Notes: generated from the sequence alone by a model not told the origin. DNA of 64,000 nt from Aplysia californica (GCF_000002075.1 NW_004798504.1:9235-73234), one strand, 5' to 3'; counted from the first letter of the stretch, positions 2,686 to 8,224 are shown. A program made the numbers and translations.

Positions 2686-5571
2686 GCCTCTTCCAACAAC
2701 AATTCTTTCAAAGAAAGGCCCGACGCCCCCCCCCCCCTTTTTTTTAAAACTCTTTTCCAGACAGGCACCATCCCCCCTTCCGAAACAATAACTCCACTGC
2801 ACATTTTATATATAGATTAGAAACGAAAGCAAAACAAAAACCAAAACCAAAATTAAACGGAACAGCCGGCAGAAAAATGTAAGGGACATAACTCATATAA
2901 TTTATATATATATATTATATAATATTTCTGTTTGTGAAAGGGATCTCTATCACCTATCCCTATCACTCTGTGCAGAGAAAGCCAAAAGTTGAAATAATAA
3001 TAATACACTGGCTTCCTGGAGATGTGCTCAACTCTTCTTCCCAAATCATAGTTGTTTATAGAATTGTAGGCCCTACAAAAACCCAAAAAAAAAGATTAAA
3101 AGTCACACATTTCGCAACCTCGCCTTGTTTTATCGAGCACATAGATCTAATTGAAAACTCAATAATTATTATCAAACTACGACGTAAGGGCGAGGACAGA
3201 GAGGCCGCCGAATAATATGTGTCGGCCTGTATCGGGCACATAATATTCACTCTGCGCCGATCTTTCCGAGGGTAGAACCAAAGAGTCTACATAACAAGAG
3301 GGGCCACTCCTCTCTTTGAGCCAATTAAAAAAGTGTCCTCAAAATTCGGTGGCGCCCTCTTCGCAAATGCGCACAGAGTTACGAAACAAGCCGCCACCGA
3401 TCCCGCAGATTGGCGCAGAGAATAGGCCGTGTCTCTGTGCATTTGTAGAAATTGTATAGATGGATTCCTATAACTTACGGCGCCTAGTGGTTAGGAGACA
3501 AAAATCGGCCGCCTTCGTGTTCTCCCTCTAATGAACGACCCTGATCGGGATCCTTAACGAATGGGGCGTTCTTGTAGTTTACTTCGTTTGCATAGGCATG
3601 CTCATAGAGTTAACTCCTTTTAAACTAGTGTACATCTATGGGCGTGTTTCATAACTCTCCTTCCACTCCATGCGCGAAGTCTTATCGGTGACGGAAGTTG
3701 TATTCCGACACCGTGCTCCTTAAAAAAAATAAATGCAATGTTTTCAGGGTGCGTTAAAACCAGCCCTATGGCCGCTATTGGTGAACGTTTAACAAAAAAG
3801 TCCCTGCCATAAATAAAGCTTCTATACGTAAGCCAGGGGCTGCTCGTGGGGCTTAAAAGTTGGCGTGCACAATTAAGCTATCTTATTCTTAGGCTGAAGA
3901 TAGTCAATGGCATTGTAAATGGAATGGTGTTTAATTTTAGGATCTTTTGGTTGGTGAGGGAGAACTTAGTGCTTTTATTTTCATTCTTTTTACTTGTCGC
4001 TTTGATTTCTAGAACTAGATCTAAATCTGTTTGTTACTTAAACATCAATTTCGTTCATCCTGCGTCGGAACTGAACACTCAAGTAATAACTTTCACCACT
4101 CCACTTCCAAACCATTCAAAGACACAACTCATAGGGTGGTATCTTAAGTATGCCACGTTCACCTCCCTCAGGTTCACGGTCACAGAGTCGCTTAAAATAG
4201 TGGCAAGACAATGAACCAATCACAGTTCAATTGAGCACTCCACCGGATTGCTCCGGGGATCACATAATTTTGGCATTGAATAGTGTACAGGCTATCGCGT
4301 TTATTTTTAGACTCCCTGCGGTGGGCTTTGTTTCGTGGGTGCACATTTGAGATGTGCCGTCTTATTAATGTTAATGTACCGCCAAAGTCGCTACGAGTGT
4401 CGTCTTCGCTGGGGTTATCCCAAATAGCGATTTATAGGCCAGACAGCCTCTGTTGAATATTCTATTACGTTTAGTTTAAGCGCGTGGACTTTGGCATGGC
4501 ATAGTAGTTGTTTTAGGGCGCTTTTGACACAGAAATGACAGTTACAGCTCCAGCGAGGACCTTGTTTTGATATTATTGGCTAGTGTCTGTTTCTGACTTC
4601 TTTTATTTCATGTTTGTGTGTGCTTTTCGTAATAGAACTTTCAAAAAATTTGGGCGGCACTGCACGACCGTGCTCTATGGACGAACCGCGCCTGAAAGAG
4701 ACATTAAGACAAAAGCAGTTAGCGATGGATATCTTTCAGGGAAAACCTTAACAGCTAAAAAAAAAATTTCTGCTTATAACTCTATGAAACTTTCTTTGAA
4801 CCCAATTGAATTAACAGCAATATTTTAAAAACCGTTTTGAAAGCTCACAAACACTACCTACCATTCGATATCCCTTTGGACCACGAGAGAGAAAACTCAA
4901 ATTAAAGGAAGAAAAAAATTCGAAAGTGACCTGGCTATTTCATAGAAAGAATATCCTTACTGGAATGTTGTTGTTTTTTAAAGCGACATGAACACTTACA
5001 CACCGGAGTAACTCTGTTCAAATTAAGCAGGTTGAAAGTTAATTGGCACCATACTGAACTTTTTTGTTCGTCCTTCGCATATGAAGATGACAATGACTTC
5101 ACAAATCGGTCTGTTGACGGTGACTGTGGGTCCGGAAATGGCTGATTAGTCCTATCCGGGCTCGGAAGGTTCGCCCACATTGTGGGCACAGGTAGTCCTC
5201 TGTTGGACTTGTGGTGGAGGCAGGTCTAGACTGGCGCACGTTGCGTTTTTGTTCGGCCTCGGCGATTCGCTTGGCTTCTGCTGCTTTGGCTCCCTTCATT
5301 AGCTTTCAGCGCCATGCGGGACGATCCAGGGCCAGCGTTTCCCTCGAGTCGCTCAGGATTCCAAGTTCTTTTAGAGAGACTTTGAGGCAGTCCCTGAAAC
5401 GTTTTTTTCTGCCCTCCAACTGAGCGCTAGCCATGGAGCAGCTCTCCATACGTCAACTGTTTTGGCGACCGGCTGTCCGCCATTCGGATCACGTGGCCGG
5501 CCCAACTGGCTCTCGTTTTGTGGAGGATGGTGTAGATGCTGGGGGTTCCGGCTCGCTCTAAAGGGGCTTTG

Positions 5572-6148
5572 AGAGATTCTTCCCCATTCCAACTACGAAA
5601 AAGCCAGACTTGGTGTTATGGGAGGAAAAAGACAAAGAGGTGCACTTGGTAGAGCTCATGGTGCCCCACGAGGACAATATTTATGCCGCACATGAGCGGA
5701 AAGAAAACCGTTACGAGGCATTCGTCGAACAATGTGAGGAGGCAGGATGGAAAGCAACCCATTTTCCGGTAGAGGTAGGATGCAGAGGTTTCGTAGCAAC
5801 AAGCACCCGTAAGTGGATGAGAGTGGCAGGACTTTCTGAAAAGAAAAGCAACGAACTCCCAAACTCCCTTCAGGAGACAGCAGAGAAAGCCAGTCACTGG
5901 CCACTGGATCTGGATGAAGCGAGAGGACGCAGGCTGGAATGAATCCTAAAAGTTGGCAGCAGAGGAAAACAGTCGAACTAGCATGGAGACCTCACATCGG
6001 TGAGGGGGCTCAGTGCGTCAGAAAAGCTGTAGAGAGGAAGAGCCCGAAACAGCGACGCATCCTCTCCTGATGATCTCTACGCTAGAGTCCGGGATACGGA
6101 GCGTTTGGCTGTGAGTGTGAGCAGTGCATACTGTTGTTAAGACTACGT
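5572..6148 (+). mobile_element. 3' fragment of an RLE-type non-LTR retrotransposon (HERO-like) nested in the RTE
   Basis: KKPDLVLWEEKDKEVHLVELMVPHED...AHERKENRY...GWKATHFPVEVGCRGF is the restriction-like endonuclease signature; flanked by a 9-bp direct repeat GGGGCTTTG (5563-5571, 6149-6157); the RTE frame rejoins as WQDKAPLERAG when it is removed. Confidence 0.88.
6006..6073 (+). ncRNA. Hammerhead-ribozyme-like motif with non-canonical strand order
   Basis: GUA triplet 6029-6031; GAAA 6046-6049; CUGAUGA 6067-6073; stem I GAGAGGA 6032-6038/UCCUCUC 6060-6066; stem III GCUGU 6026-6030/ACAGC 6049-6053; stem II GGGCUC 6006-6011/GAGCCC 6040-6045; extra helix UGCGUC 6014-6019/GACGCA 6054-6059. Confidence 0.55.
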
Positions 6149-8224
6149 GGGGCTTTGTCTTGCCATCGGATGCGGAGGATTTTACGAAGACAGCTCAGGT
6201 GGAATCGATTGAGCTGCTTGGCATGTCTGCTGTAGACAGTCCAGGTCTCGCTGGCATAGAGAAGAATGGAAAGAACCACTACCCGGTAGACCTTCAGCTT
6301 TGTGGAGAGGCTGAGTCCTCTGCACTCCCAGACATTCTTGCGGAGCCTCCCAAAGGCGACGCTGGCCTTGGCAACTCTGGTGTTAATTTCAGCATCTATA
6401 TGTACGGCACGTGAAAGTGTGCCGCCTAGGTAGGTAAAGTGGTCAGCTGCCTGGAGTTTCTGTCCCTTCACCATGATTTGTGGCACTGTGTATGGTTGTC
6501 CAGGGGCTGGTTGGTACATGACTTCGGTTTTCTTGGTGTTGATGGTGATGCCGAAGTTGTTACAGGCTAATGCGAAACAGTTCATTTCGTTTTGCACACA
6601 CCCTTCTGTGCTAGCTTTGAGTGCAGTCATCGGCGAAGAGAAGTTCCCTGATGACTCTTTCTTTCACCTTGGTGGCGGCCAGGAAGCGCCTGATGTTTAA
6701 CAGCCTGCCGTCAGTTCTGTACCTGATACGGATGCCAGCTTCACTGATGTGGAAGGCATCAGTTAGCATAGCGGAGAATACCATGCTGAAAAGAGTTGGG
6801 GCAAGGGCGCAACCTTGTTTAACGCCGTTGGTCATAGGGAAGGTGTCTGACTCACCTCCGTCCCCTAGGCTAACACCTTCACCATCATACCATCGTGAAG
6901 CTGTCTGACGATGGTGATGAATTTACTTGGACATCCATACTTCTCCATGATCCGCCATAGTCCTTCTCTGCTGACAGTGTCGAATGCCTTCGTTAGATCC
7001 ACAAAGGTCACGAGTAAGTCGCAGTGTTGCTCCTGGCATTTTTCCTGGAGTTGGCGGGCGGCGAAGATAATGTCTACAGTTCCTCGTTTGGCCCGGAAAC
7101 CGTACTGAGTCTCTGGGAGGAGTCCCTGTTCCAGATGATGGAGAGGCGGTTAAGTAGGACCAGAGAGTTTACAGGTAGGACGCGGGCCAGAATCTTGCCG
7201 GCTTTAGACAGGAGTGAAATTCCCCGGTGATTAATATGGAACACTCTCGCTCAAACCCCAGGCCGACCGTTCTTGGATTTCTTGAACCTAAAACTTTATG
7301 CAAGATCAGTGGGGAAGATCAGGTTAAAGTGGAAAGGAAAACAGAAAACTGAGAATTGCTTTCTTTGATTAAGGGAAATTTATCGGCGCAAACCATAGAT
7401 GTACACTATAGGTATAAAAGTAGACAACTGTATGGCGCAAACAGTAAAACATTTTCGAGGACAAGGGAGATAACTGCAAAAATAACTCTTCATACACAGT
7501 CATTGAAATGAGTTCCCCTTGAAGTAAACGACATTTCTGTCTCTGTAGCTGTAGCTGTAGCTCTGACTGGAGTTATAATTTCTTATACTAGATCTTGATG
7601 TAGGTCTAGATATCTATACTTAACATGTTTTTTTTTGTGCATTTAACATGATTTTTGCTTATAATCCTTATCCAAGAATGAGACCCTAGCATTTCACAAA
7701 TGGAAAGTAGATCTAACGGGTTTTATTTTTGAGACAAAAAAGTGCTCACATGTAGCCTACGTCCTGTAGTTTATTTACATGTTCACTGTTTTCCTAAATT
7801 AAAGAGTGACCACTTCATCAACTCTGGAAACAACAAACTGCTACTTTAAAAAAAAAAGAACATTTCGATTCAATCTTTGTAGGCCTATCTGAATGAGTAT
7901 GTTGTGCATAATTATTCACCCGATAAATCTAACTGGAGGTTAAATCTAAAAAAATGCGAACTCATAGGAATCAAAAACTTGGTCGGGTTTTTTTTTTTTT
8001 AAATTGTGGCTATGAACTTCACGACCACCTGTTTAGATCTGGTTTTAAATGTTTTGAGATTACGATAATTAAAAGTAGGTGAGTGAGAAGATAACTATGA
8101 ATTGCTCTTGACCCACTGTAATCGTTATTTGAAAAGTGAAATGTAAGCAACAATGCGAAATTATTCAATATTTATTTTGTTCACGAAAGCAAATATTTAA
8201 TGTAACTTCCATTTTTGGAGATTC

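Follow-up and report, generated by a model that had tools for sequence, protein, structure and literature searches.

A predicted hammerhead ribozyme with a permuted strand order in the 3'UTR of an R2/HERO-like retrotransposon of Aplysia californica

The window analyzed here is a stretch of 64,000 nucleotides of the Aplysia californica genome (GCF_000002075.1, NW_004798504.1:9235-73234). It contains the last 584 bp of a retrotransposon unit of about 3.7 kb, as a 5'-truncated copy that aligns by blastn to positions 3085-3654 of the unit from a longer copy (L035) with 92.8% identity to the younger copies. Shortly after the stop codon, the sense strand contains GUA, GAAA and CUGAUGA, each next to the helix that a hammerhead ribozyme requires. 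In window coordinates, the features are as follows.

5565-6148 (+), 5'-truncated copy of a retrotransposon with a restriction-like endonuclease
5940-5942 (+), stop codon of the RT/endonuclease ORF
5982-5989 (+), helix E, 5' strand (CAUGGAGA), closing the whole domain; it pairs with 6074-6081, with 7 of 8 pairs in this copy and 8 of 8 in the younger copies
5990-6005 (+), hairpin H0 (CCUCAC-AUCG-GUGAGG), abutting helix E and stem II with no unpaired base
6006-6011 (+), stem II, 5' strand (GGGCUC, G10.1 to 10.6), pairing with 6040-6045
6014-6019 (+), helix B, 5' strand (UGCGUC), pairing with 6054-6059
6026-6030 (+), stem III, 3' strand (GCUGU), ending in U16.1 and pairing with 6049-6053
6031 (+), H17 (A), with the predicted cleavage between 6031 and 6032
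6032-6038 (+), stem I, 5' strand (GAGAGGA, N1.1 onward), pairing with 6060-6066
6040-6045 (+), stem II, 3' strand (GAGCCC), ending in C11.1
6046-6048 (+), G12 A13 A14 of the core
6049-6053 (+), stem III, 5' strand (ACAGC), starting with A15.1
6054-6059 (+), helix B, 3' strand (GACGCA)
6060-6066 (+), stem I, 3' strand (UCCUCUC)
6067-6073 (+), C3 U4 G5 A6 N7 G8 A9 of the core (CUGAUGA)
6074-6081 (+), helix E, 3' strand, directly after A9
6082-6148 (+), 3' tail up to the fixed 3' end of insertions (ending GACUACGU), with a small conserved hairpin at 6089-6099

The first-pass annotation had correctly located stems I, II and III, the fourth helix (B) and the core segments, but not hairpin H0 and helix E. 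It had feared that UCUCUAC, just after CUGAUGA, would compete for GUAGAGA, but this sequence is part of the 3' strand of helix E.

The genome (927 Mb, 4332 contigs) holds hundreds of copies of the element and at least 150 complete copies of the RNA domain. L035 has a single ORF of 1095 aa with RVT_1 at residues 363-593, and the best solved relatives of its product are R2 proteins. In an alignment of 16 C-terminal regions, the residues of a CCHC motif (C183, C185, H193, C198) and of PD...E...K motifs (P289, D290, E305, K321) are invariant, which makes the element a non-LTR retrotransposon with a restriction-like endonuclease. One database relative, 96% identical, is named from Aplysia californica. 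Relatives about 45% identical occur in Branchiostoma, which is only suggestive of a place in the HERO clade.

The 3' end of the element was defined by aligning 30 Aplysia copies, in which the flanks diverge right after GACUACGU, 117 nt past the predicted cut. The DNA right after the 3' end of many insertions, including window 6149 onward, starts with AC or ACGTAC-like bases that extend the terminal ACGU of the element, suggesting microhomology or a target preference. One Aplysia copy (L002, G000:C382:606082-609268) ends in several tandem repeats of the last 50 nt or so of the 3' tail plus about 20 nt of other sequence, which could reflect repeated initiation or template jumping at the 3' end. 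On the opposite strand of the window, an ORF of 182 aa (6082-6630) abuts and overlaps the 3' tail. It has a weak, below-cutoff match to DUF6451 and may be a remnant of another repeat next to which this fragment inserted.

Rfam models gave no ribozyme match at window positions 5000-7000, even at E <= 10, as expected for a permuted order. The minimum-free-energy (MFE) fold of 5990-6100 is an unremarkable nested hairpin (z-score -1.43). As the Aplysia copies are too alike (92-100% identical) to inform on pairing, 3'UTRs of relatives were collected through their proteins (30-83% identical). Contigs encoding proteins 46-68% identical (L038, L039, L043-L046 and L061) and an amphioxus genome locus (L059) all show the same arrangement with different helix sequences. 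In L059 (4326-4443) the ribozyme overlaps the end of the ORF, and the stop codon spans the last base of the stem I 5' strand and the two-base link to the stem II 3' strand. The small hairpin of the 3' tail also covaries (CCG/CGG against CCU/AGG) in L038 and L039. A protein-anchored scan of metagenome contigs added 80 loci.

In total, 61 loci carry the same RNA, always on the sense strand after the ORF. A descriptor for the layout found 50 hits in loci chosen by protein homology alone, all on the ORF strand, with none antisense and none in shuffled sequence. Covariance models built only from nested helices found 52 and then 71 matches, the latter at E <= 0.01, all on the + strand. All 71 model matches and all 50 descriptor hits lie downstream of the ORF or in the spacer before the next ORF. 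Of 63 protein-selected loci with at least 260 nt of sequence after the ORF, 48 carry the motif, and about a quarter of related loci lack a detectable one. At least one close relative (L037, protein 75% identical) has a different 3'UTR made of repeats of about 130 nt (3943-4396), without a hammerhead-like motif in the 457 nt available. No motif was found in a Dreissena locus (L060) whose gene model has introns, and Rfam models gave no ribozyme match in 20 related loci that lack the motif.

Stems I, II and III, helix B, hairpin H0 and helix E all covary. In an alignment fitted only to H0, B and III, stem I was paired in 96.2% and stem II in 82.5% of cells, and all 5 stem I pairs and 5 of 6 stem II pairs change on both sides. 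In a second alignment, fitted only to E, H0 and II, stem I was paired in 98.1%, stem III in 96.5% and helix B in 73.8% of cells. Helix B was paired in 90.9% of cells in the alignment fitted to it, and all 6 of its pairs change on both sides, as do all 6 pairs of H0 (95-96% of cells paired). Helix E is poorly aligned in distant members (62-70% paired), because its offset varies. Overall, 83.8-84.9% of cells pair in register, against 42-49% when the partners are slid by 1-3 columns. The covariation score is 0.62-0.64, against 0.09-0.15 for slid partners, and 0 of 500 shuffles reach it.

Core conservation was assessed in 63 distinct sequences found by a covariance model that does not enforce the core. 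G5, A6, A13 and A14 are conserved in 63 of 63 sequences, C3, U4, G8, A15.1 and U16.1 in 62 each, A9 and G12 in 61 each, and C11.1 is C in 60. N7 is U in 37, A in 13, C in 10 and G in 3 sequences, and H17 is A in 26, C in 26, U in 11 and G in none. This is the hammerhead consensus, including where variation is allowed. G10.1 is misaligned in some distant rows of the model alignments, but in the descriptor hits, which are anchored on the pair, G10.1-C11.1 is G-C in 44 of 46. A few relatives carry changes at otherwise invariant positions (G12A in L121:2378-2487, A9U plus A15.1G in L123:2360-2467, C3G in L139:834-951) and are probably dead copies.

The first-pass annotation had proposed a hammerhead core in a non-standard, pseudoknotted strand order, and this central reading is supported by the comparative data. 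Its statement that the known types are the circular permutations I, II and III is out of date, as natural non-circular permutations have been described and validated in vitro (Eckert et al., 2023, PMC10085705). The type-SGC ribozymes of that study (HRIMA-1 motif and variants) share with the present RNA the core consensus, the order of cleavage block, GAAA block and CUGANGA, and a short link (about 1-8 nt; mostly 1-8 nt here, about 3 nt in type SGC) from the stem I 5' strand to the stem II 3' strand. They also share the fourth helix, which joins the segment after the stem II 5' strand to the segment before the stem I 3' strand, and in some members the 0-nt join of stem III to that helix (0-44 nt in type SGC). 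In type SGC, however, the stem II 5' strand directly follows CUGANGA, because block C was assumed not to be interruptible. Here, the sequence after CUGANGA pairs with the region 5' of H0 and not with the strand before GAAA, and the 5' strands of stem II and helix B lie upstream of the cleavage block. The type-SGC chain ends (distal stem III and helix B) are joined here by a linker of 0-9 nt. Type-SGC RNAs were found next to hairpin ribozymes in metatranscriptomes, whereas the present RNAs are in animal genomes, inside an autonomous retrotransposon.

The arrangement amounts to a circular permutation of type SGC, opened inside the core between A9 and G10.1. From 5' to 3', the order is helix E, hairpin H0, stem II 5' strand, helix B, stem III 3' strand, U-H17, stem I 5' strand, stem II 3' strand, GAA, stem III 5' strand, helix B, stem I 3' strand, CUGANGA and helix E. 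A9 runs into E, E runs into H0, and H0 runs into G10.1, without any unpaired base in Aplysia and in at least 12 of 46 distinct sequences. This is the connectivity of a perfect four-way junction, and we infer that stem II could keep stacking on the G-A pairs of the core while E stacks on H0. A break of the core strand at this point has no tested precedent. We found no paper with this layout, and none with a hammerhead in an element with a restriction-like endonuclease, in a literature search that did not cover most subscription journals.

The elements lie head to tail in Aplysia, amphioxus and metagenome contigs. Two contigs of 4407 nt from separate assemblies (L041 and L042) have a 119-nt exact terminal overlap and are rotations of one 4288-nt unit, the signature of a circular molecule or a perfect tandem array. 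L040, L043-L045, L038, L046, L061 and the amphioxus locus L059 repeat their ends, and Aplysia ribozyme copies occur 3704-3707 nt apart on one strand. In every contig with enough upstream sequence, a ribozyme copy also lies 170-680 nt ahead of the ORF, and the ribozyme is thus not only at the 3' end. The 5' leaders of distantly related family members (L035:4369-4545, L043:1309-1400, L044:3690-3750, L061:3840-3935) share repeated short hairpin-like units built around GGAAAGAC (for example GUCGG-GAAAGA-CCGAC), a conserved feature of unknown role. In contrast to the 3' end, Aplysia insertions have no fixed 5' end; full-length copies continue through the unit junction into an upstream 3'UTR and stop at scattered points.

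Together, we consider it probable that window 5982-6081 encodes a hammerhead-type self-cleaving ribozyme, with cleavage between A6031 and G6032 inferred by analogy and not measured. Because units lie head to tail, the cut would also free the RNA of the next unit ahead of its ORF, and unit-length products may be re-joined into circles that template cDNAs longer than one unit. This would resemble the HDV-like ribozymes at the 5' end of R2 and other non-LTR retrotransposons (Eickbush and Eickbush, 2010; Ruminski et al., 2011, as cited in PMC13725137). Those belong to a different class (nested double pseudoknot), encoded at the 5' end in R2, whereas the present RNA is encoded in the 3'UTR and reaches the upstream position only through the tandem layout. 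It would also resemble the hammerheads of Penelope-like elements and retrozymes (Cervera and de la Pena, 2014, 2016; Lunse et al., 2017; PMC11167929), which lie on the sense strand in the repeated inter-unit region, upstream of the next ORF, and for which unit-length RNA, circular RNA and rolling-circle copying have been proposed. Those are classical type I or III hammerheads, often minimal and acting as dimers, in elements with a GIY-YIG endonuclease or no ORF. Some observations argue against a simple version of this role. Among 11 Aplysia copies that span the unit junction, the 5' ends are spread from -1293 to +74 relative to the predicted cut, with only two near it at +5 and +14 and no clear pile-up, so that many templates were intact across the site. 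A cut in an element's own 3'UTR would remove the 117-nt tail at which insertions end, and cutting must therefore be partial, regulated or reversed by ligation. In a Penelope element, the hammerhead was not needed for insertion in vitro (PMC11167929).

The same observations could indicate a fold that resembles or derives from a hammerhead but no longer cuts, serving as the 3'UTR handle that the reverse transcriptase recognizes to start target-primed reverse transcription. R2 proteins bind a pseudoknotted RNA in the 3'UTR (PMC12222951), and cutting would remove the 3' tail. We regard this as unlikely, though the two roles are not mutually exclusive, since protein binding alone does not explain why the invariant bases are exactly the catalytic set, why N7 is free and why H17 is anything but G, and since the same four-helix layout cleaves in type-SGC ribozymes. 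A core formed only between two RNA molecules, as the first-pass annotation had suggested, appears very unlikely. Small Penelope-element hammerheads do act as dimers (Lunse et al., 2017, cited in PMC10085705), and by rough geometry helix B, with no linker to stems III and I, looks strained, a point also raised by Eckert et al. However, helix E and hairpin H0 close the domain within the molecule and both covary, and type-SGC ribozymes with the same four helices need all four for cleavage during transcription.

A chance resemblance within an ordinary nested hairpin, the MFE fold in which CUGAUG pairs with CAUCGG of H0, is contradicted by the data. The helices specific to this fold pair in 59.1% of cells against 57.4% in shuffles, with a covariation score of 0.129 against 0.117, compared to 0.62 for the hammerhead helices, and the descriptor had no hits in shuffles or on the antisense strand. 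A conventional hammerhead using a second GAAAC after CUGANGA is not supported either, as this GAAAC occurs in L038 and L043 but is absent in Aplysia and most relatives, and no stem II can form there. HDV-like or twister readings of the pseudoknots do not fit the helix order, judged by reading the sequence, or the Rfam results.

Until 2023, only three circular permutations of the hammerhead were known, and three non-circular ones were then proposed on the assumption that each core block is indivisible. The present RNA, if it cleaves, breaks that assumption, and it suggests that descriptor searches have been blind to a further class of hammerheads. Its compact domain of about 100 nt, closed by a stem, may also be a convenient format for ribozyme engineering. 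It would bring non-circular permutations from viroid-like metatranscriptome RNAs into animal genomes, and give R2/HERO-like elements a hammerhead where only HDV-like ribozymes were known. More tentatively, a whole clade of autonomous retrotransposons with a restriction-like endonuclease, found in molluscs, amphioxus and other marine and soil animals, may multiply through ribozyme-cut, unit-length RNAs that are re-joined into circles. Rolling-circle reverse transcription of those circles would explain the universal head-to-tail arrays and the lack of a defined 5' end. In this view, the ribozyme would be an independently evolved hammerhead topology in which a four-way junction replaces a core phosphodiester, which would show that the three hammerhead blocks can themselves be split. 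Together with the tandem layout, the RNA makes a testable link between autonomous LINE-like elements and the circular-RNA life style of retrozymes and Penelope elements.
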